A DNA stretch of 63,525 nt, counting the filler, from Trichosphaerium sp. ATCC 40318 (lineage: Eukaryota; Protista; Tubulinea), in NCBI GenBank assembly GCA_038496445.1. It is 4 parts of 4 records of this genome, joined end to end, with 100 filler letters (N's around TTAATTAATTAA, not from the genome) between each part and the next. Parts side by side here need not be neighbours in the genome. Positions count along the whole stretch, not along the records: positions 48,605 to 60,289 come from JALMLS010000393.1; 3 more parts are not named here. One strand, 5' to 3'. How positions within the stretch are numbered: the first letter of the stretch is position 1; each line of letters starts with the position of its first letter. Under the pieces are notes generated by a model. The model had not been told where the DNA came from. It worked only from the letters and a program-made list of their open reading frames with translations, and ran no database searches. Shown here one piece after another: positions 48,605 through 60,289 of this stretch. Both the position numbers and the translations under genes were made by a program.

Positions 48605-48722
48605 TCGTGTTGTTTGACACCTTCAAATATACCACGTGGTAAGTGTCTGTTTCGGGCAAAAGATTGTCCTCGCTGAAAACGACTGACTGCAATTGGCTCT
48701 GTCTTAAAAAGGATTCTACAGC

Positions 48723-51002
48723 ATGCTATCGTCCATAACTGCAGATATAAACGCTCGTTTAGCAACGTACGAGCCGTGGAAATTAGTAGTCGGCGGTGCG
48801 GGTGTTACGCTCGCTGGGGTAGCGTTATACAACCACTACTTCGCTGACTTGGGTTCGTAATACATTTCGTACAAAATGGTGCTAAAAATTACGCAAGACT
48901 TAAAGGACGCGCTATTCAAGCAGATACGTAATATTCCGGGAGTGTCAGGGAAAATACAGGATGAACATGTCAAAATTGCCCAAAAGATACGCCAAACCGT
49001 GTCTAGTTTCGACGACAATCCATTGAGCGATTTACCAGAGGTACTCCCGTTTTGTTTGCTGACGGAACGTTTCGGCTCATTTTGATTGAACAACTAGGAA
49101 GGCCTTTCACACGCAGACGTAATACAGGTCATGACCAAGCTCAAAGAGAAAGAAGGCACCACGTGGAAGGATGGTTACGTGTCAGGAGCCGTCTACAGCG
49201 GTGCAGATGATCTTGTTCAACTCTCCGCAAAGGTGCTTGCATCCCTTCTCTGTAAGCTGCTAACTACCCTTCGCACAAGGCGTACGAACTGTTTTGCTTG
49301 GCGAACCCGCTGCATTTGGACTTGTTCCCAGCCGTAAGAAAGTTTGAAGCCGAAATTGTGCGCTTTACGCGAAGTATGCTCAACGGCGACGAGGGAGTTT
49401 GTGGTGTGGTTACTTCTGGTGGCACGGAGAGGTATTTTTTTTTGTTACCAGAATTGTTGTCATCTTACTTCGTACCTAGCCTATTGATGGCATGCAAGGC
49501 ATACCGAGATCAAGCATTGGCCAAGAAAGGCATCAAACATCCAGAAATGTACGATGATGACTTTTCTAAAAACTTGTTTTTGGTCAGAGTTTAAGACTTT
49601 TCTTGTTTACAAACATCTGCTTTAGTGTTTTGCCCGTTACGGCACATTGTGCGTTTGACAAGGCAGCGCATTACTTTGGCATTAAACTAGTTAAAATACC
49701 AGTCAAATCCGATTTCAAAGTAGACATGGCTGCACTTGAAGGCGCTATTACCAAGTAAGAACATCCCCAATTATGCCTTTTCCTGAATGTGCGCTCCTAG
49801 GAATACGATAGCTCTTATTGGATCAGCACCTGGATATCCACACGGGACCATAGATGATATTTCAGGCTTGTCGGACCTTGCCATCAAGTATAGTGTGCCA
49901 CTACATGTAGACATGTGCCTTGGAGGGTAAGTTTTGTTTATGTATTCGCTTTACTCTTTTTTGTTGTTGTCAGGTTATACAACCGCGCCTCACAATTTTA
50001 TGTTTCTTCACCAACTACAGGTTCACTAATTATTTATGGGCAACAGGTTCATTTTACCATGGGCAAAAAGAGAAGGATGGGACCTTCCAGAATTTGACTT
50101 TAGTCTACCGGGTGTCACATCCATCTCAGCTGATACACACAAGTACGCTTTTGCACCAAAAGGTACATCTGCGCTTCTATTCAGAAACAAGGTATGTAGT
50201 TGCATCGCACACCTGCCAAGCGTTGACGTTTTGTGTAGGACATTCGCCACTACATGTTTTTTGTAGCGACTGAGTGGCCAGGTGGTATTTACCCAAGTCC
50301 AACCATGCCTGGCTCGAGGTAATTAACATCTAAACGCCAATATCTCTGTCTCACATACGCGTTTAGGCCAGGTGGAGCTATTGCAGCGGCATGGGCAGTG
50401 ATGATGGTTAACGGCAAAAAAGGGTATCTTGACGCCTCTAACAAGATAATGCAGACCGCAAAGGACATCAAAGAAGGCCTTAGAGCCATTAGAGAAATTA
50501 AGTTGATGGGCGATTCGCTCTCGCCAATAATAGCATGGGATACTATTGACTCGATAAACATTTACAACCTCAATGACTACATGTCAGAAAAGGGCTGGAA
50601 CCTGAGTGCCTTGCACAAACCAAAAGGGTAAGTCTACTATATTACCTAACCGTTATATCACCATAATCGTCTGTGTAGATTGCATCTTTGCGTTACTCTA
50701 CGCCAAGTTGGTAAAGTAGACAAATTCTTGGCGGATATCAAGGACTCCATAGAACTCGTTAAGAAGAACCCTACTGTCAAAGTACTTAACCGCCACTTTC
50801 TTTTATTACCTCTTTTTGTGGAGTAAAGTCAGCTCACTAATTTTTACATAGAATGGCAGTGCACCAGTCTATGGCATGTGCGCATCTCTTCCAGATCGGT
50901 ACTATCTCATTTTTATTTGTTTAATACCTGACATACCTATGCGCTAGGGGTCTCATCAAAGAGATAACATGGACATACATGGATGCTTTACTGGACGCTT
51001 GA
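48723..51002 (+). CDS. SGPL1: Sphingosine-1-phosphate lyase
   Basis: [63 protein letters not shown] (PLP lysine), GSRPGG. Confidence 0.95.
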
Positions 51003-51234
51003 GATGGGTAGTTGCCACAAACAACACTTGTAACAACCACATTCAACAACCATTTGTATCACTTTCCTATTATGATTAAAAATAAATGAGTCGCCGTTGC
51101 ATTTTTATCAAAATTCAGGGTAACGGTTTAAGTCACGTGTCATTTTTTTTTGTAGCGACACTTTATTATTTCGCTTTAAAACAGTGTACATTGCCGCCTA
51201 CACCTAGGTAGTGGCTCGCCAGTATAGTAGCAGT

Positions 51235-54200
51235 ATGGAAAAATCCTACAAGGTACTAGAACGCAAAGTTCTGGAGTGGGTAGGCGCCGTACTTGAACAG
51301 AAACTCCCCGCCAAGGACTTCCAATCACTATTCGGCGACGGCGTGCTTCTTTGTAGGTACGTTGTTATGTTTAGCATCAACTCTTTTGCACATTGAGTGC
51401 GTGTCAGCGTAACAGGCATTAGATTGTTGAATAAAATAAAGTCCGGGAGCGTGAGGCGCATCAATGAAGGCGTAAACCTAAAGCATAAGTTAAAGCAAGT
51501 AGTAAGCAAACGGGTATCGTACAACAAGCATTAAACGCGTGCTAGGATAACATAAACAGCTACGTTGACGGTTTTAAAAAACTGAGTCTTGGGATATACG
51601 TTTTCGATACCATCAGTCTCTCTGAAGGCAGGGATCTATACTCTGTTATTGTGCACTTGTACTCCTTTGGCCAACGCGTAAAGAGAGCGCCTGGGTGAGT
51701 AATCACAGCCCTGCACCAAGCAAAGCTCGAGGGCAATGATATCACGTGTAACAATCTTGTAGGTACTGTGGTCCCTTCATATCAAGGGGTGGTTCAATTG
51801 CCATCGCTAAACAGCATCAAGTACGAAAGAGCGATAAACGGAAGAGCGAAAAGCGCAGGAGCGAAAAGCGACCTAAGCGAGGTTTGAGACGCCAAACTCA
51901 AGAAACGCCTCAATCCATCGCTCCTGCTATCAATGTCAAGCCTGCCACGGTAAGCCATTTCTTGGCGTTGTTGTAGCCCCTTTGAACTTACAGTCGCCGA
52001 GATACCAAAGGAACCCACACCAAAACTTAAGAGAAGATTTAAAAGGTATGGTAGTAATCGATACACTTTAAGCCATGCAGCACACTAACAGGATTCGTAG
52101 AGTGAGGCCAATGAGTTGGTTTGCTGGCCCCGCCAAAGGAGTACAAATCTCAGTAAGTGTCGAGCAGTGGCTCTGTATGCTGCACAGTCTACTGATAGCT
52201 CACCTACCCTCAGGTTCCATCTCTAGAAAAATCGGTGCAAGCCAAAGAAGCTCTAAAGCACGATTCAGGCCTTGAACAGGCAACAAGAAAGTGGATTGAA
52301 AGCGTGCTTGACACCAAATTTGAAGGGTCGTTTGCATCATTCCTGAAATCAGGAGTAATACTGTGCAACTTGGCAAACGCTGTCATTCCAGGAAGCATTG
52401 ACGGCGTTCAAACCGCCAGAAATCCTTTTGTACACAGGGTACACAAAACGCAAAAAATGAAAAAGGGGTGTGTTCTATTCACACCTTTGTACAGGAAAAC
52501 ATTGCCAAGTACCTCGCATTTTGTAAGAAGATTGGCATGTCTCAGAGCTTTGACACCAATGACTTGTATGAAGGCACGTGCCCAAAAATTTATACGATGT
52601 AAACAGGTAGCTGTTTTCTTAATACCAAGCCCAGAACAAAACCTTATGCGCGTCATCATCAATATCTATTCAATTGCTGACAAAGCCGCCAAACTTGGAT
52701 ACAAAGGACCAACAATACAGCCTGAGAATGAGGCTTCAACGAATAAGCACCTGTACGGCCTGCCACAGGATCACAAAGACGATCATGATTCAGTACGTCT
52801 TCTCTCTTGCACCCACAAAGCACAAGGGTTTTTTCCTTGATTCTACGCGTTATTACGGTGTACTAACATTTGCAATTAGACACCAGACACAGAAGAAGAG
52901 AAGGTACGCTTGGAAATGTACATTCATAGCCTCTGACAATACATAGAAATTGGTTGTGTGGGTGAACAAGCACATCACTCAAGAAAACAAAGTGCAGTCT
53001 TGTACGTGCATACTTACCTACTACGTATTTCACGTGTGACTCACCATCATCAAGTTGGCCAATGCAAACGAGGCTCTATTCTGGTTCAGTTGTGCGAGAA
53101 TCTGAGTGGAACCGAATTGATAACGTGCGCTATAATCATATTATCATTTTTTTCCTCGTGAGAATCCAGCAAAACTAAAACACTTTTTACAGCTATGGTG
53201 GATCTAAAGACATCTCAGACTCTGGCGTTTTCTTAAATTCGGAAGCTGAAACTGGTATACTCAATGTAATGGAAGTGTATCGATCAGTCACACAGATTAC
53301 GATGAAGCCTCCTCCGGTTCAAGCCAAAGGTACATAGACCATCCTGTCATGCTGCATCACTCCGATTGCTAAACCCAGTGTAGATGTCGTACTAGGCAAT
53401 AGAGATGCTCTTGCCCAACTTCTCCAATTCATGATGCAACACCTCGACCGCGACAACTACCTTAAATCACGTACAATCTTTAGAATATTTTCTTGTTGTT
53501 CAAAGCTAACGTAATATTCGGATTGTAGTGAAACAAGACACACGCTGTCTCAAGATAACTGAAGAGATCATAGAATCCGAAGAGAGCTACTTGAATTACC
53601 TCACTATTCTATGCCAGGTACACACACACAGTGTTACTAGTCGCGCCACTACATGGATGAGTACCTTACTGAAATGAATAGAACTTTGTTAAGCCGTTCC
53701 AAAGCGATCCTTCATTGCAGTCGATACAACCCTACATCAAGAAATTGCCAGATTTACTTGATATATGCGAAGAACATAAAGCACTCATAGAACGCATCAA
53801 GGTAAAGAAAGTGTTATAAGCAACCAATCAAACCAATGAGCGTTTTAGAAAAATCGTAAAGAAGACCAAAGAGAGGATTACAAGGCACTTGCGCACGTTT
53901 TCCAAAATCACGTGCGCCATGTAAGATACAGTTAACCAACTGATCACGTATTTTAGACACAATTTCTTTTGAACTATTCAGCATACTTGAACAACTACGA
54001 GGCAAACTACTACTCCATAAAGGTACTACGTAGGGAAAATCAAGGCTTGGATAAATTGATTGAGGTACACACATTACACGGCGCTTGCCTGTTTCTTGTC
54101 TTTTGCTGAGTACCCTTACAGGGATTCGAATCCAGTTACGGTGCTGGCCTCGATCTGCTATCGTTCTTGATTATGCCCGTCCAGCGTGTGGGAAGATATG

Positions 54201-55101
54201 TTCTGCTCTTCAGAGTATGCGGCCCAGTATCAGTCTCTACGTTGATAAAATTCTAGGAGCTAAGGACCAACGTACCCAAACAAGATGAAGATGTGATTGC
54301 AAAGGCGGAGTCTCACCTACAAACATGTGCTGATACGCTGAACGAGAAGCAACGCGAGTTTGAAAAAACGTTTTCAGACATGCACAAGTTGATCGAGCTA
54401 CAAAAACAGCTCAAGGACTTTGATGTACGGACGGAGTACACGCCGAATTAATGCGATGCGTGCCTTCACTAAATAACCCATGCTTAGGACTTGATACACC
54501 CAAAACGCAAGTTTGTGAGGGAAGGTGCTGTGACGTTGATACAAAGAGACGAAGAGGAGGTACCCACTTTAAAGTTTGAGTTGGTTACTCTAACACGGCG
54601 TTTCTCTTCAAGTACACTGATGAAGACTACTCCGATGAGGAAGACAGCGACGATCAAGGAGGAGACGACGAGGACAGTGAAAGTGAAGAAGAAGAAGAGT
54701 GTGAAGCCATTGATGGCATGGTGCGTACCTACTTTTTTTTTTTTGAACATCAAGTTAATCTTTTCTCAGGCATTCCTACTTTGTGACTACCTTTTGTTTG
54801 CATCACACAACCAAGCCAAGGACAAAACGAAGTTCCCTCTAATATTCGAAACATACTATCCGCTAGCCTTTGTCGAAGAGACGTGCATTGCAGACGATGG
54901 CACGCAATCCATACCTCTTACTATCACAGCCGCTAACACCAAGGGATAGATGATTGCGCAGTTGACATTACGTTCGAAGAAGGATCGATAACCTTGAAAT
55001 GTACCGATTCCGCCGATGCTGATGCTTGGCTGGCGGACATTGAGAATGCAGTCAAGCACGTCGCAGAAGTTGATATTCTATTGTTCCAGAGCGAATGCTA
55101 A
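51235..55101 (+). CDS. RhoGEF with multiple calponin-homology domains, DH and PH
   Basis: CH: FGDGVLLC, LKSGVILCNLAN, DLYE. DH: KIIESEESYLNYL, LLSFLIMPVQRVGRYVLLF. PH: RKFVREG..WLADIENA. Confidence 0.85.
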
Positions 55102-55189
55102 GTCACAAAATATTGTGGTTTTTATGGCTATGTTTTTTGTACCATTAAAAATAACCGTAGAATGTAGTATTCGATTGTGTACACAACGT

Positions 55190-56445
55190 CCCTTTATTAC
55201 AACGCCACAAGACTGCTCCTTACTCTGGTGGGGGCTGAAATTCACCAGTTGGGTTACTTTCGGTGGTAGCAACAGGTCTATTTTGCCCTGGGCGAGGTTC
55301 TTCTGGAGGAGGCTCGAATTCACCATCATTTGAATTATCCTTGTCAGTCTAGGCACGTGTTAGTAAATCCAAAAAACGTGCTTGTGCCTCTCAAGACAGT
55401 TAACATACCTGTTTCCAGTCCGTTTGTTGTAAAACTTTAAGCGCGTTGCAAGCCCGTGGTGTACAAAACGCAAAGTGCCAAAATGCTGGTATTAACTGGG
55501 TGTCGTCAGCGCCGTGAATCGCCCACGGTCCTTCTACAATATCATATGGGTGATTCTTTTCCTGTTTTGGTAGCAAACGTTAGCCATCTTTGTACAAGTA
55601 CTATATGTGTGGGGGTTACCTTTTTACCACCTTTTGTGCATTTGAGGCAAAATTCATTCCATTCCTCCAGCGATGAAAACGTTTTCCACTTGAGATTTGG
55701 GTTGTTTCTCAGCATCTCGGTCAAGTCCCATCTAAAATACACTAGGTTGGCGGTTTCCTGCCTCTCCTTGACAGATTGTATTGTCGAGGCAACTTCCGCT
55801 ACAATACAAATGATTCAGAACAAAAGTGAAAAAGCAAAGCAAGCATAATCATTTTTGCATAAACATAAAAACAGAAAACAAATGAGTAGCTGTGCTGTTG
55901 TCCACGCACCTAATTCAGGATCAGCTGTAGTGTAGAAGGCACCAGGGCTGTTCGCTGTGACGAATACACCTTCTTTTCGCCTAAATATACCGCTCTACAG
56001 GGTGTCAGAAGTTTGTCTTGTGGTTTTGTATATTTATGTGTTGGGCCTTGGAAGAAGCAAACCCTGTGCTTGATGACACCAATAAAAAAAACAGTGAGCG
56101 CACTTGACTTATTTTTATAGAATCAGTGTAGACACAACCATGCCAATGATCCTCTCCTACTGTGGCGTGACCTTCCTTGTTGACACCATATAAATGCAAG
56201 ATGTCTCTCCACGCCTCTTGGCGCGTGTGGTAGCCAGTTTGTACAAGCGCTGCCATCATGTATCCATTGAAAACACGCGATGGTTTATACTTTGGAGGCC
56301 TTGTCGGCACCTCCTTGTTCGGAAAGGCCAACGTGAATGCAAGTTCCCAAGGATCTTCGTTACCAATTGTTAGCACCAAGTCCTTGCAATCCCTCTCGGT
56401 GTTAGCTTCCCTCAGCCTTTTTGTCATGTCCGTCCAATTTGTGCC
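55190..56445 (-). CDS. Hypothetical intron-containing nuclear gene; its 5' part is replaced by the mitochondrial block
   Basis: Open exons 56005-56427 and 55542-55742 with GT-AG boundaries; no family recognised. Confidence 0.4.
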
Positions 56446-56456
56446 TGCAGGCGGTG

Positions 56457-57883
56457 TGTGATTTACTGATATTTCTTATATTTTTGGGATGATAGAGGAA
56501 GATACATGAAAAAAAAAAAAGGTCAGTATTAGGTTTTTTTGTTGAGAATTAACAAGCACATATATGACAAGTGTATTCAGTGTGCTAGTGTGTTTTGTTT
56601 AGCTTAGAAGTATTTGGTAGTTTTGGTTTAGTTTTTTAGGTCGTGGCATGTTTTTAGAATTAGTACGTATAGAGAAAAAATAATTACGGAGAATTAACAA
56701 CAAATTTTATAGCAGTATGTCCTGTAGAGCATTTACCTTGAAGCCTTTTGAGTTTGCGTCTAGAAAATGGGAGCAGTTGTTCAGGATACTTTAGATGTTA
56801 ATGATGTGTTAGAGGAAATTTAACAATGATGTAATTTTTATATATATAGTTCGAACTAAAGCAAGTTAAATGAATTTTTAATATAGAATGATTAACTAAT
56901 AAAGCAAGATTTGCGTTTACAGTTTTTATTTTAAACGGTTATGGGGATGTAGATTTAGGTTTTTTGACAAGAAAATAGAGAAAAATAAGATCAACTCATA
57001 TAAGCGTAAGTTGATCTTATTTAATCTCATGATGGTTATGACTATACAAATCGTTAAATTTTACATTTTAGTATAAGAGTAGTTTTGATATTAAAGTGTA
57101 AATAGCATTAGAAATTTTATGAATAATATAGGAGTGTAATAACAGATTGTATTGTGTAAATTATAACAAATATGGTATTTTATTTGTGAATTGATTTCGA
57201 AATTGCTTTGTTTGATTGCTTTTTTATATGTTTTCTGATATTCGTTTAGAATTGCCTTTATTAGGTTACTGATTAAGAAAGTTTGATTTGAAAAACTAAT
57301 GAAATATTTTACTGTTGGTTAGGTGTAAAGTCTATATACTTAGGTGTAATAATATAGGCTGTACTATAAAGAATTATTATATTTAGCTTTGGTGTAGGGC
57401 TAATTGTAAAGAAAGGTTCGCTGAAAAAAATCAAAATATGTTTAGTAGATGGGAAGGTATACTAATTTAAAAGAAGTGTGGTATTATACAACAAAAGTTT
57501 AAATTTAAATATAAAATGAGAAAGTAAGAATAATTTAGGAATTTTATAAGTCAAGATATTTCAAGGTTAATTTTAGTTTTTTAGGGTTATTAGGCTTGCA
57601 AAAAAAGGTGTAAAAAAAAAACAAATTCAAAGCATAATTTGAATTTGTTTTTTGGGCAAGGAGAATAAACAGAATAAATTTATTAAATATAGATTAAGTA
57701 AATTTATTCATCTAAATTATAATTTACGTAAAAATTTAGGGCGTGAGTAGATGTAGCGGTGCCAGATTGGTCTATACGGAAAAAGATGTTGATATTCTAA
57801 TATAGAAAATGTTTTACAAAAAGTTACAAGGTAATGCGTCTTTTGAGTTGAAAAAAATGTAATTTCTATTTTATTTTTCAATA
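56457..57883 (+). CDS. nad11: NADH dehydrogenase subunit 11 cryptogene (5'-truncated; needs single-nt insertions)
   Basis: With insertions it reads CDL.D...FGMDRGRY..KKRSV..VGELTSTYMTRCIQCARCV..LGFLGRG..EISTY..ELTTNFIAVCPVGAFTLKPFEFASRKWE..RLNEFLNIEWLTNKARFAFD, later SDIRLELPLLGYWLRK; 3' end approximate. Confidence 0.88.
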
Positions 57884-58002
57884 ATTTACTGTTGGTATAT
57901 TGCTCAAAATACTATACTTTTTATGAAAATATACATATTATTAATATGTATATTTTCATAAAAAGTATAGTATTTTGAGCAATATACCAACAGTAAATTA
58001 TT
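57880..58002. repeat. Perfect ~61-bp-arm palindrome at the nad11 3' end
   Basis: aataatttactgttggt...catatta t taatatg...accaacagtaaattatt. Confidence 0.9.
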
Positions 58003-58232
58003 ATTGTATTTTTCCTAGGTAATGTTTTTTTTGTTGGGGAAAAATAGTTTTATAAAAAAGTAATTATGAAAAGAAGTATAATAAAGTGTTTTTAAACTGA
58101 TTGTTATCGTAAGTTTTTTTATTTGTAATTACTTTAAGATAACAATGAATATGTTAAATCGTCAAAATATTTGCGGCAACAGGTAGAAACAGTATAGTAA
58201 TAGTATAAATTTTAAAAAAGAGTAAAAAAAAA

Positions 58233-58360
58233 ATGGAATGACAAATAGTATTAGCAGCAAAAGTATTAGCAGCAGGAGTATGTACTGTCGGTGTAGGAGG
58301 AGCAAGTATAGGTATAGTTTTTTATTTGTTTTCTTATAAATATAGTTTTAATTTAATGGA
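58233..58360 (+). pseudogene. atp9: ATP synthase subunit 9 N-terminal fragment/cryptogene
   Basis: ME(TGA)QIVLAAKVLAAGVCTVGVGGASIGI, then g[G]t..g[G]t gives GFLFGFLI; no RNP loop or second helix recognisable. Confidence 0.65.
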
Positions 58361-58631
58361 AAAAGTATATTAGAGTGAATAGGTTCTTTTGGTATTTATA
58401 ATGTTGGGTTCAAAATATAAATAAAAGAGAAATATTGTGGAAAGTGTGATATTTATAAATATTTGATTTTGTAGGTTTAGGGTTTTTTTTTTTACATTAA
58501 TTATTAGTTATAATTTATTTTTAATTTTAATTTTTATAATATTTTTTATATGAATATTAACGATTTTTTTTTTGCTTTTTTATAACAATGTTATAAAAAA
58601 GCAAAAAAAAAATGTTATTATGTTATGAGGA

Positions 58632-59570
58632 ATGGATCCTATGGCGTTAGCTGTGGGAGGTATTGGGTATGTAGACATAGGTTTTGGTTTTGCAGCCACT
58701 TGTATTATAGGAGTAATAGTAGGCGTGATGGTGGTAGTAAATAGAAGATCAGCATCAGAAGAAGGAGAAAAAAATATAGAAGGAGAAAAGAAAGAAGAAG
58801 AAAAAATAGAAGGAGAAAAAATAGAAGGAGAAGAAAAAATAGAAGAAGAAAAAATAGAAGGAGTAGAAAAAATAGAAGGAGAAAAAATAGAAGAAGAAAA
58901 AATAGAAGGAGTAGAAAAAATAGAAGGAGAAAAAATAGAAGGAGAAAATATAGAAGGATTAGAAAAAATAGAAGGAGAAAAAATAGAAGGAGAAAATATA
59001 GAAGGATTAGAAAAAATAGAAGGAGAAAATATAGAAGGAGAAAATATAGAAGGATTAGAAAAAATAGAAGGAGAAAATATAGAAGGAGAAAATATAGAAG
59101 GATTAGAAAAAATTTTTGATTGAATAAAAGAGTGAGAATTGTATAACAGTGAAAATTTAAAAATTTATTTAGAAAACAGTGTTTCAGCATTATCTAAAAA
59201 AAATGTAGTGTGTTATATAGACGTCTGTATAAATAGTCTGAAATTGAAATTAGAAGAATTATTTGCTTATTTTAATACTAAAGAAAACATAAAAACCTTA
59301 GATTTAGAAAATTTAAGAGCAATAAAAAAAAATTTATATGATTTGATAGAAGTTTTTGACTGGCAAGCTACAGATGTAGGAAAACTGTCCAAGTATTTTA
59401 AGGATCAAATGCATAGATTTGTGGAGAATAATGCATCGCTATTAGAGGCCCGACGTGATTTATGGGCAAAGCTTTTAGAAAAATATGGATTACTGCAAGA
59501 TATATTATGAGGGATTGTTAAGTCTAGATCAATAATAAAAGAGGCAATAAAAAAAAATTATCAATATTAG
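58632..59570 (+). CDS. Mitochondrial ORF312 (code 4): N-terminal TM, acidic EKIEG tandem repeats, helical C-terminus
   Basis: Track ORFs 58632-59123 and 59139-59510 share a frame and are separated only by TGA codons; reading TGA as Trp gives one ORF ending at TAG 59568-59570. Confidence 0.7.
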
Positions 59571-59899
59571 ATAAAGAAATAGAAAACAGATGAAGCGAAT
59601 GATTTTATGAAAAAGGCGTTGATTTTTATTATTTTATAACCAACATGCTGGGAAATATATATGAATTTTTTTCTTATTTTTTTACTTAAACTACTTATAG
59701 TTTAAGTAAAAAAATAAGAAAAGTGTGTAAATTTTGAAAAAAAAAGAATGTTATTTGTATTATAAATGAATATTTAAAAAAGATAGTTATTTGTTTATAA
59801 TTTTTTATAGTTTCAAGGGAAGAAGCGAAATTAAAAATAAATTAAGTTCTTTATTTTATTTTTTTTGTTTTTTAGTAATTTTAAATATATTAATAAATA

Positions 59900-60289
59900 A
59901 TGTTAGTTATTTTAAAGTTTATATTTTATATTATTTTAATGTTTCCGTTTATTTTTGCGGAGCATTATTAACTTTATGGAAAGAAAAGTTATGGCTGGTA
60001 TCAAAGAAGGAAAGGACCTATGTAGTAGGTTTATATGGTTTATTACAGCCATAGCTGATGGGTTGAAATGATTTGAAAAGAAACAATAATTCCTCAATAC
60101 GCTATGGTATTTTATTTGTTTTTGCTCCTTGTGGTTGTTATTTTTATCTTAGTTCTTTTATCCTTATTACCTTTGTCTTTTTAAAATGTAATCATAGATA
60201 TAGATATAGTTTGATGTTGATATTTGTTATATCGTCATTAGGTGTTTATGTTTAATTTTTGCGGGTTGGGCAAGTAACTCAAAATATGC
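59900..60289 (+). CDS. nad1: NADH dehydrogenase subunit 1 cryptogene, 5' part (cut by the gap)
   Basis: With 11 single-nt insertions it reads [49 protein letters not shown]...ISSLGVYGLIFAGWASNSKYA. Confidence 0.92.

Follow-up and report, generated by a model that had tools for sequence, protein, structure and literature searches.

Candidate cryptogenes nad11, atp9, and nad1 in mitochondrial-type DNA of a Trichosphaerium contig: one-base deficits consistent with mostly-G, neighbor-copying RNA insertion

Three standard genes of Trichosphaerium sp. ATCC 40318, nad11, atp9, and nad1, are probably cryptogenes, i.e., genes whose DNA lacks single bases that are required in the mRNA. Judging from the reading frames, the transcripts would be repaired by insertion of mostly G, each added base copying an encoded neighbor, with UGA read as tryptophan, and the copy at hand is joined to nuclear DNA. 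Frameshift-aware alignment of nad11 and nad1 calls for 25 one-base deficits and no surplus, and the insertion is placed at the RNA level because supplying the bases restores protein conservation. The window, a stretch of 63,525 nt assembled from four records of the genome, contains these genes in an 11.7-kb piece from JALMLS010000393.1 (positions 48605 to 60289), of which the right-hand 3.8 kb is mitochondrial-type DNA. All positions below refer to the window.

RESULTS

Genomic context of the mitochondrial-type DNA

Maximum-likelihood analysis with Markov models of order 0 to 2 places the change point from nuclear-type to mitochondrial-type composition at 56455 to 56469. The SbfI/PstI palindrome CCTGCAGG at 56444 to 56451 lies inside the junction interval, and one of just two PstI sites in the 11.7-kb piece is the one at the junction. 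The left-hand part is nuclear-type eukaryotic DNA with intron-split genes (Table 1); a protein atlas look-up confirmed the family of one nuclear exon and nothing further, and a word search with the nuclear open reading frame (ORF) 56008 to 56427 returned zero relatives.

The nad11 gene is truncated at its 5' end at ~56455 to 56457, with the first ~107 codons absent from the contig. Upstream of 56457, frameshift-aware scores for similarity to the N terminus of NuoG equal the shuffle level (z about 0), and a P-I-C at 56434 to 56442, considered as a remnant of nad11, was indistinguishable from chance. Since mitochondrial-type DNA abuts nuclear DNA at ~56455, this nad11 copy is either a nuclear insert of mitochondrial DNA (NUMT) or an assembly or cloning chimera. 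The junction is a warning that the contig does not equal the mitochondrial chromosome, and the truncated, nuclear-joined copy may differ from the expressed one; the mitochondrial gene structure of the organism is still reported by this copy.

Identification and repair of nad11

The gene was characterized with our own frameshift-aware protein-to-DNA alignment, using NuoG of Sphingomonas, Sinorhizobium, Neisseria, and Escherichia coli as references. A frameshift penalty of 5 overran into junk on both sides, and penalties of 7 to 13 were adopted. Across 56457 to 56941, the alignment requires 16 one-base deficits and no surpluses, with symmetric penalties in both directions, and scores 235 compared to 31 ± 4 in dinucleotide shuffles; the nad11 and nad1 scores exceed those of shuffles by 40 to 50 standard deviations. 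Adding the 16 bases yields a single 167-codon frame that is 44%, 40%, and 39% identical to NuoG of Sinorhizobium, Sphingomonas, and Neisseria, respectively, and gapless in the Sinorhizobium and Sphingomonas comparisons (blastp E = 4e-42 for 167 residues at 44% identity, with the database size set nominally to 1e8). The repair restores C-I-Q-C-A-R-C and C-P-V-G-A, giving the cluster N4 signature of Nad11/NuoG, C-x-x-C-x-x-C ... C-P. The alignment begins at residue ~108; the N-terminal 2Fe-2S ferredoxin-like domain is missing from the contig, as is most of the cluster N5 His/Cys motif, along with the first ~107 residues.

Conventional searches did not recover the gene: the stop-free nad11 pieces had zero matches in Pfam and the longest of them zero matches in PDB (phmmer), as expected from pieces that span merely 10 to 15 codons. 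Downstream, nad11 extends to about 57860. No significant alignment to NuoG was found for 56942 to 57749, the middle domain being too diverged or too edited; it is assigned to nad11 as probable because it sits between two NuoG-like stretches on the same strand. The C-terminal motif beyond it again contains lone-G glycine sites. Searching the piece for Rfam families and tRNA genes yielded no tRNA and, on the palindromes, chance miRNA-like matches only.

Deficits in atp9 and nad1 and intact neighboring ORFs

In atp9, the lone G at 58317 must be doubled to obtain G-I-G, and this extra site arises only with G in the alignment to AtpE, a reference distant enough that it resolves a single atp9 site. 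Read by eye against the general GxGxGxG motif of c subunits, the lone Gs at 58328 and 58345 would also be doubled, and one further site would lie near 58365.

The repaired nad1 is 46 to 51% identical to NuoH (E about 1e-29); as with nad11, the repaired frame is continuous and the identity extends along all of it. When stop-free pieces of the three genes were compared with Pfam, one weak NADHdh fragment (nad1) and nothing else was found. Two features of nad1 fit less well. At one place (60127 to 60132), two bases are needed within 4 to 6 nt, which counts against an explanation like that for the heterolobosean amoeba BB2, where no such place is seen, and an in-frame TAA at 60182 to 60184 counts against editing.

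Two long ORFs nearby are free of frameshifts (Table 1). The first, of 163 codons, has no Pfam family and no match in an exact-sequence look-up (58632 to 59120). The second, of 123 codons, has no Pfam family, no relatives in a word search, and no HMMER match among 1.84 billion representative proteins. Degenerate-pattern scans of metagenome contigs gave zero matches. Given that neither ORF requires an added base and that the nuclear exons are unbroken, the deficits are gene specific and do not reflect a general error rate.

TABLE 1 Features of the JALMLS010000393.1 piece (window positions); bracketed letters mark the added base
Feature	Position (nt)	Strand	Basis or description
Nuclear-type eukaryotic DNA (context)	48605-56456	.	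43% GC; strand skew absent; genes intron-split
Exon-like segments, nuclear-type part	49098-49591, 50030-50263, 50323-50628		Resemblance to sphingosine-1-phosphate lyase/PLP-decarboxylase
CH domain, nuclear-type part	ORF 52235-52840		Pfam PF00307
Nuclear/mitochondrial junction	56444-56469	.	Composition change point and SbfI/PstI palindrome
nad11 (NuoG/NDUFS1 homologue), Fe-S domain part	56457-56941	+	Frameshift-aware alignment, NuoG residues ~108-281
nad11 site 1	56466-56467	+	2-nt codon CT between TTA and GAT; G, A, and C each fit
nad11 site 2	56489-56490	+	AT before GAT; ATG (next G copied) equals any alternative
nad11 site 3	56506-56520	+	AT (56506-07) before GAA, or extra A in A12 run 56509-56520
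nad11 site 4	56544	+	Lone G; G[G]A = Gly, column Gly in 3/3 references; +G 11.0, next 5.0
nad11 site 5	56571	+	AG[G] = Arg of invariant T-R-C; G or A 25, C or T 22
nad11 site 6	56588	+	AG[G] = Arg of invariant C-x-x-C-x-R-C; G/A 27, C 23, T 21
nad11 site 7	56631	+	Lone G; [G]GT = Gly in L-G preceding G-R-G; alignment weaker here
nad11 site 8	56657-56658	+	GA[A] = Glu; A copy 5.7, G copy 1.0
nad11 site 9	56689-56691	+	GA before GAA; no single base favored
nad11 site 10	56727	+	Lone G; G[G]A = Gly of invariant C-P-V-G-A; +G 21, next 15
nad11 site 11	56771-56792	+	Within overlap of two open frames; no single base favored
nad11 site 12	56812	+	Lone G; G[G]A = invariant Gly of D-A-V-G; +G 10.7, next 7.7
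nad11 site 13	56826-56827	+	AT before GAT; Ile or Met
nad11 site 14	56865	+	AG[G] = Arg of P-R (Arg in 2/3 references)
nad11 site 15	56875-56880 (56878-79)	+	In or beside T5 run; A or T fits, G does not
nad11 site 16	56922	+	Lone G; G[G]T = invariant Gly of D-G-L; +G 7.7, next 3.3
Probable nad11 middle part	56942-57749	+	Poorly conserved molybdopterin-like domain; between two same-strand NuoG-like stretches
Perfect small hairpins, nad11 middle part	56983-57022, 57616-57653		
nad11 C-terminal NuoG motif	57750-57822	+	D-V-x-x-P-G-x-x-Y-T-E-K-x-G; score 38, maximum 26.7 in 25 shuffles
Lone-G Gly sites, nad11 C-terminal motif	G 57765, G 57788		GGA; GGT, respectively
Perfect palindrome, 61-nt arms	57880-58002	.	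3' of nad11, presumably intergenic
atp9 (ATP synthase subunit c)	58233-58420	+	E. coli AtpE alignment
163-codon ORF	58632-59123	+	Frameshift-free; N-terminal hydrophobic helix, then ~21 copies of a 15-nt E-K-I-E-G-like repeat
123-codon ORF	59139-59510	+	Frameshift-free
nad1 (NuoH homologue)	59949-60287	+	First ~115 codons, runs off piece end; 9 one-base deficits, 0 surpluses
nad1 deficits, base not specified	Near 59997-60002; 60046-51; 60066-70; two within 60127-60132	+	
nad1 doubled-A site	60020-21	+	[A]AT = Asn of G-P-N
nad1 doubled-A site	60104-05	+	[A]AT = Asn
nad1 lone-G sites	G 60209, G 60250	+	Each GGT = Gly

Distribution of the nad11 sites

An earlier sequence-only reading had listed 16 positions in nad11, and all of them match alignment sites within 0 to 3 nt or inside the ambiguity range. 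That reading had missed both the truncation of nad11 at 56457 by the junction with nuclear-type DNA and the extension of the gene to about 57860. The gaps between sites are 15 to 46 nt (mean, 30.5; coefficient of variation, 0.35). Compared to a random model of 16 sites in 485 nt, a minimum gap of at least 15 nt has a probability of 1e-4, and with a placement error of ±3 nt, the probability of a minimum gap of at least 9 nt is 0.01. The minimum spacing of ~15 nt claimed in that reading thus holds in nad11; it does not extend to nad1, with its two bases within 60127 to 60132, or to atp9, where sites read by eye lie 11 nt apart. Its count of 13 of 16 sites placeable next to a G is true, and is at chance level once sites may slide by 2 to 3 nt (expected, 12 to 13.5; P = 0.45 to 0.77). 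Third positions or glycine codons describe the sites fairly (Gly codon positions 1-2 are doubled at five sites, AGG is completed at three, and another three to four fall at the boundary between xxG and G), without a silent third-position bias of the kind seen in Physarum.

Nature of the added base

At the level of protein fit, the added base in nad11, nad1, and atp9 is mostly G and not C. Of 22 informative sites, 17 are fitted better by G than by C and 5 the reverse (Wilcoxon p = 0.007), and G likewise outperforms T (p = 0.002). When a single base was allowed throughout, the local scores summed to 295 for G, 265 for A, 256 for C, and 233 for T. Across the 25 sites of nad11 and nad1, no other base outscores G at about 15, and at about 9 the fit does not discriminate the added base. 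Ten sites in the three genes have a conserved Gly (or Arg) that is obtainable only by doubling a lone encoded G; only G beside the lone G yields the conserved Gly at 56544, 56727, 56812, 56922, 60209, 60250, 57765, 57788, and 58317. In addition, of the 13 columns with invariant Gly, 5 carry a shift site (hypergeometric p = 0.003). Two nad1 sites, including that in G-P-N, require a doubled A.

At the 11 firm G sites, the insertion point is preceded by A-G in nine cases and by T-G in two. A corresponding flanking motif, with A 5' of the lone G (9 of 11 sites) and T/A 3' of it, was set aside, as it reflects codon usage (xxA followed by GGT or GGA) and the context also occurs unedited. The same context is found with and without a deficit, as TAT-GGT-TTA at 60037 and TAT-G.T-TTA at 60250. 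Since identical local contexts are edited or not, site choice needs a further specifier.

A rule in which the added base copies a neighbor retains 298 of 316 possible points (94%) and is usable at 25 of 25 sites, while generating under half the number of candidate products that the control rules do. It is not statistically separated from the control rules (e.g., transition of the neighbor); an A-to-G neighbor rule does equally well because most lone Gs follow A.

Genetic code

The in-frame TGA at 56889 to 56891 is aligned with the invariant Trp of N-E-E-W in nad11, and UGA is therefore probably read as Trp. Other in-frame TGAs occur in nad11 (57790 to 57792), at codon 3 of atp9 (58239 to 58241), and in nad1 (60074 to 60076).

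DISCUSSION

Proposed mechanism and alternative explanations

At each site, the simplest repair would be to double a single encoded base. The doubled base would be a lone G in about two thirds of the cases (GA to GGA or GT to GGT, Gly; AG to AGG, Arg) and otherwise A, more rarely T or C. Under the model proposed for BB2, the mitochondrial RNA polymerase would, at specified positions, copy one template base twice during transcription (reiterative copying, or stutter), and the ~15-nt minimum distance in nad11 might be the footprint that specifies or resets a site. The sequence-only reading had likewise preferred polymerase-coupled insertion or stuttering to guide-RNA block editing, and this is probably still the better explanation of the frameshifts, which all call for an added base, are evenly spaced, and lie beside an encoded G.

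Mostly-G insertion could also be the work of a separate machinery, nontemplated or posttranscriptional. The statistical inseparability of the copy rule would allow for this, as would the further specifier that must exist and the nad1 place that needs two bases. We nevertheless consider such a machinery unlikely, as all 25 sites can take a neighbor copy at a small cost in score, and in BB2, 475 of 475 insertions obey the copy rule and hardly any partially edited RNA occurs (PMC5421314).

Sequencing or assembly errors, for instance, G or A runs called one base short, are a quite improbable source of the deficits. Each deficit can be rendered as a run that has lost a base (GG to G, AA to A), one site adjoins the A12 run in Table 1, and the contig, itself short, breaks off inside nad1 and contains a suspicious junction. 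However, 96 GG and 18 GGG runs persist in the same 3.8 kb, and the contexts at 60037 and 60250 are identical with and without a deficit. The 163- and 123-codon ORFs and nuclear exons of ~80 to 110 codons are unbroken, surplus bases are absent, and the spacing is even instead of random.

Editing of the Physarum type, in which a nontemplated C (sometimes U or a dinucleotide) is added cotranscriptionally, would match the density, the minimum spacing, the A/T-rich mitochondrial DNA (mtDNA), the unedited extra ORFs, and the mitochondrial location of nadG/nad11 (PMC3152335, PMC10048350), and a C-only alignment still yields 16 nad11 sites. The C-only repair of nad11 scores 174, however, versus 206 for G only, and the conserved Gly/Arg residues at the ten sites cannot be reached with C. 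The insertions of Physarum comprise 1255 C, 43 U, 2 G, and 1 A, follow purine-pyrimidine, and fall chiefly at silent third positions; four of its ORFs end in UGA, a stop codon there (PMC3152335), which here stands at an invariant Trp. The gene order differs as well (PMC10048350), and the added base follows a purine (A-G) in place of a purine-pyrimidine pair. C insertion of this type is very unlikely because the added base is mostly G and UGA occurs at a conserved Trp.

The frame might instead be restored on the ribosome, through repeated -1 frameshifting or the decoding of doublets, which the sequence-only reading had already ranked below editing and which we regard as highly improbable. One shift per site would equally restore the downstream frame, and many programmed frameshifts are known in mitochondria, e.g., the +1 shifts in Perkinsus cox1. 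An in-frame slippery heptamer (X XXY YYZ) is, however, found near only 4 of the 25 sites; Val, Glu, or Ser would replace the invariant Gly/Arg residues that G doubling restores; and with more than 25 shifts in less than 900 nt, full-length protein would hardly be made unless each shift were ~100% efficient. Finally, random damage to a dead gene in a decaying NUMT, to which the adjoining nuclear genes, the loss of the first ~107 codons of nad11, and the in-frame TAA of nad1 could be ascribed, deserves hardly any credence, as 25 of 25 indels are in one direction (P about 0.002 even given an aligner bias of 78% "insertion" in shuffles), single-base, and evenly spaced, repaired frames keep 40 to 51% identity and all Fe-S motifs, and three genes share the pattern; a NUMT may well describe the location, yet it leaves the deficits unexplained.

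Comparison with known systems

The closest known system to the proposed stuttering is the editing in Heterolobosea sp. BB2, which in the literature searched is the one amoeba documented to have neighbor-copying insertional editing (PMC5421314). Its 475 insertions are single, 84% G, each identical to a neighbor, near-complete in RNA, and without a motif (PMC5421314). The deficits described here match BB2 in calling for single-base additions and no deletions, in the dominance of G with some A, C, and U, in lacking a clear flanking motif, and in lying in genes that standard searches do not recognize; the copying of an encoded neighbor seen in BB2 would be possible at all 25 sites. In contrast, the sites are about four times denser here, at 1 per 30 to 38 nt versus roughly 1 per 110 to 120 nt, the latter being our own estimate from 422 insertions in protein genes and unidentified reading frames (URFs) (PMC5421314). 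Heteroloboseans are reported to have the universal code (PMC7900873), whereas UGA appears to be a sense codon here. The two long ORFs are editing free, unlike the edited URFs of BB2, and the DNA is more A/T-rich, with looser gene packing.

It is conceivable, as a tentative reading, that editing by writing a template base twice evolved, probably independently, outside the myxomycetes and the known heteroloboseans, with a Physarum-like density and UGA as Trp. In that reading, ~3% of the mRNA bases would be added, mostly through lone-G doubling that creates Gly/Arg codons; site distances would be regular, of at least 15 nt, in at least one gene, and site choice would go beyond local sequence. If true, a second case of neighbor copying, four times denser, under another genetic code, and with ORFs left unedited next to edited genes, would allow site choice to be compared and would show that this cryptogene route arose more than once. 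Because Pfam, PDB, and word-based protein searches do not see such genes, annotation misses them or labels them pseudogenes.

The likeness to Physarum put forward in the sequence-only reading stands for density, spacing, and unedited extra ORFs and breaks down for the added base, upstream context, third positions, and UGA. Physarum and Didymium have ~1 site per 25 nt of mRNA and a minimum distance (9 nt in Physarum), comparable to 1 per 30 nt and a minimum of 15 nt in nad11; the exception here, a 4-nt pair or dinucleotide in nad1, has a counterpart in the dinucleotide insertions of Physarum. Further shared traits are a cotranscriptional model, edited standard genes beside unedited extra ORFs, nad11 (nadG), atp9, and nad1 as mitochondrial genes, and mtDNA of about 25% GC. 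In Physarum, however, C is added at 94% of the sites and G at 2 of 1333 (PMC3152335, PMC3285571, PMC10048350). The A-G or T-G upstream of the firm sites differs from the purine-pyrimidine context, in many cases the amino acid (Gly, Arg, or Asn) depends on the added base, and the gene order is different (PMC10048350).

A last parallel is the editing of paramyxovirus P-gene mRNA, where the polymerase recopies its template and places an extra G beside an encoded G (summarized in PMC5421314). The viral process differs in its single site per genome, its A(n)G(n) homopolymer tract, its variable number of Gs, and its partial efficiency, in contrast to the lone Gs and dozens of sites considered here.

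Composition and gene content

The piece (positions 48605 to 60289, from JALMLS010000393.1) consists of two compositional parts, with a likelihood change point at 56455-56469. To approximately 56455, the DNA has 43% GC, with C and G at 22% each and no strand skew; beyond this point, up to the end of the piece, GC drops to 25%, with 18% G and 6% C. The left part carries eukaryotic nuclear genes split by introns, and the right part is mitochondrial-type DNA with nad11 (NuoG/NDUFS1 homologue), nad1 (NuoH homologue), and atp9 (ATP synthase subunit c).

Features of the piece, in window coordinates
Feature	Position	Strand	Remarks
Sphingosine-1-phosphate lyase / PLP-dependent decarboxylase	49098-49591, 50030-50263, 50323-50628	+	Exon-like pieces, introns between
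Calponin-homology domain exon	52235-52840	+	ORF; Pfam
140-codon ATG ORF	56008-56427	-	Without relatives; start ~30 nt from junction
nad11 minus 5' end	56457 to ~57860	+
Perfect palindrome	57880-58002		61-nt arms; 3' of nad11
atp9	58233-58420	+
163-codon ORF	58632-59123	+	Function not assigned
123-codon ORF	59139-59510	+	Function not assigned
nad1 start	59949 to piece end	+

Perfect hairpins with 25-nt arms are found at 58563-58613, in the gap between atp9 and the 163-codon ORF, and at 59669-59722, ahead of nad1; two small perfect hairpins lie in the unaligned middle of nad11 (56983-57022 and 57616-57653). The perfect hairpins of the mitochondrial part could act as signals for processing or termination, or they could represent mobile hairpin elements.

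Single-base deficits in nad11 and nad1

The stop-free pieces of nad11 (20 to 36 codons) gave no match in Pfam or the PDB. NuoG proteins of E. coli, Neisseria, Sphingomonas, and Sinorhizobium, taken from annotated collections, were aligned to the DNA using a purpose-written aligner that permits 2- and 4-base codons at equal penalties. Across 56457-56941, the alignment contains 16 two-base codons, marking deficits where the DNA is one base short of the conserved frame, and no four-base codons, with a score of 235 compared to 31 ± 4 in dinucleotide shuffles. The count stays at 16 regardless of which base may be added. Adding 16 bases yields one frame of 167 codons, with 44%, 40%, and 39% identity to NuoG residues 108 to 281 of Sinorhizobium, Sphingomonas, and Neisseria, respectively, and a gap-free alignment to the first two. 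The 16 positions proposed in the sequence-only reading agree with the aligner sites to 0-3 nt or fall within their ambiguity ranges (56506-56520 and 56771-56792).

The gaps between these sites span 15-46 nt (mean, 30.5; coefficient of variation, 0.35). For 16 random sites in 485 nt, a minimum gap of at least 15 nt has P = 1e-4; if a placement error of ±3 nt is allowed, P = 0.01 for a minimum of at least 9 nt. Both the nad11 sites and the evenness of their spacing are therefore real. The minimum of about 15 nt put forward earlier thus holds in nad11. It is not general, as nad1 has two deficits inside 60127-60132. In atp9, two lone-G sites identified by eye (single encoded Gs whose doubling restores a conserved residue) are 11 nt apart.

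Over 339 nt, nad1 is one base short at nine places in total and has no surplus base; the repaired nad1 product is 46-51% identical to NuoH. UGA probably encodes Trp in this mitochondrial code, judging from the in-frame TGA at the invariant Trp of N-E-E-W in nad11 (56889-56891) and at three other places: 57790-57792, 58239-58241 (atp9 codon 3), and 60074-60076 (nad1). An in-frame TAA in nad1 (60182-60184), flanked by two well-aligned stretches in the same frame, could mean that this copy is dead and carries a nonsense change, that an edit went unrecognised, or that there is an error.

The ORFs of 163 and 123 codons, in contrast to the neighbouring standard genes, are free of frameshifts. The former starts with a hydrophobic helix and includes approximately 21 copies of a 15-nt unit (seven of a 48-nt unit) at 58760-59113, encoding E-K-I-E-G-like units. 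The latter (75% A+T DNA) has no relatives in any of the protein collections searched, including one of 1.84 billion representative proteins.

Identity of the added base

Every single-base insertion was tried per site in a five-codon window and scored on a three-bacterium profile. At nad11 sites 56544, 56631, 56727, 56812, and 56922, the conserved residue is obtained only by a G beside a lone encoded G, converting GA/GT to GGA/GGT, the Gly of C-P-V-G-A, D-A-V-G, D-G-L, and others. The same is required at 60209 and 60250 in nad1, at 58317 in atp9, and at 57765 and 57788 in the C-terminal nad11 motif. At 56571, 56588, and 56865 (nad11), only G or A yields the conserved residue, with AG becoming AGG, the Arg of T-R-C, C-x-R-C, and P-R. 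A doubled A is needed at nad1 60020 (Asn of G-P-N) and 60104 (another Asn).

Across the 25 nad11 and nad1 sites, G outscores C at 17 and falls short of it at 5 (Wilcoxon p = 0.007), and 5 of the 13 invariant-Gly columns coincide with shift sites (p = 0.003). Under a copy-a-neighbour rule, the sites are best assigned as 15 G, 7 A, 2 T, and 1 C, which scores 298 of the 316 points reachable rule-free. The rule is compatible with all the sites, but control rules are not statistically separated from it. Approximately 9 of the 25 sites fit more than one added base. The count of 13 of 16 nad11 sites adjacent to an encoded G is confirmed, but chance expects 12-13.5 once 2-3 nt of sliding is allowed per site; what decides the matter is the amino-acid evidence. 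As for the proposed third-position bias, there is no silent bias like that of Physarum, since the choice of amino acid often depends on the added base. A precedes the lone G at 9 of 11 sites and T or A follows, which is the pattern expected from codon usage. The same context occurs both ways, TAT-GGT-TTA at 60037 with GG encoded and TAT-G.T-TTA at 60250 with a lone G to be doubled; therefore, local sequence alone cannot mark the sites.

Extent of nad11 and the junction

Similarity to NuoG begins at residue ~108, halfway through the His/Cys motif of cluster N5 and exactly at the composition break; the N-terminal 105 residues of NuoG score as in shuffles against the DNA upstream of the break. 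No alignment to NuoG was obtained for the middle domain. The motif D-V-x-x-P-G-x-x-Y-T-E-K-x-G of the NuoG C-terminal part is present at 57750-57822 (score of 38 versus a shuffle maximum of 26.7), so nad11 extends to ~57860. The join between nuclear-type and mitochondrial-type DNA (56444-56469) lies inside the nad11 reading frame. The SbfI/PstI palindrome CCTGCAGG (56444-56451) lies only a few bases to the left of this break, and the piece has just one other PstI site. The piece may be a nuclear insert of mitochondrial DNA (NUMT) or a ligation, cloning, or assembly chimera. Either way, decay does not account for the deficits, since all 25 run in the same direction and involve single bases, and conservation is intact once they are repaired.

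Mechanism and comparison with known systems

The analysis shows the deficits in the DNA and which base restores conservation. The deficits probably reflect insertion at specified sites at the RNA level, with a second G as the usual addition; in the simplest case, the polymerase would read one template base twice at these sites. Canonical -1 frameshifting during translation, which the sequence-only reading had ranked as a less likely alternative, is unlikely: slippery heptamers are close to just 4 of 25 sites, and a shift would place wrong residues at invariant Gly and Arg. Sequencing error is also unlikely, given that 96 GG and 18 GGG runs remain, the adjoining ORFs and nuclear exons are intact, surplus bases are absent, and the spacing is even. 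The suggested likeness to Physarum editing is limited to site density, spacing, and the presence of unedited extra ORFs; Physarum-type C insertion is rejected on the added base, the upstream dinucleotide, and the use of UGA, which is a stop in Physarum (PMC3152335).

The closest system to the nad11, nad1, and atp9 deficits is that of the amoeba Heterolobosea sp. BB2, with 475 single insertions, 84% of them G and every one identical to a neighbouring base, and with no deletions and no motif (PMC5421314). BB2 editing probably takes place during transcription, with stuttering as a proposed mechanism (PMC5421314). Our literature search returned no further report of copy-the-neighbour, mostly-G editing. 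The site density here is approximately four times that of BB2 (estimated from totals in PMC5421314), and UGA is a sense codon, although the universal code is reported for heteroloboseans (PMC7900873). Further differences from BB2 are the two unedited ORFs and one place needing two bases. The deficits could, tentatively, represent an independent and denser origin of BB2-like editing in another lineage.
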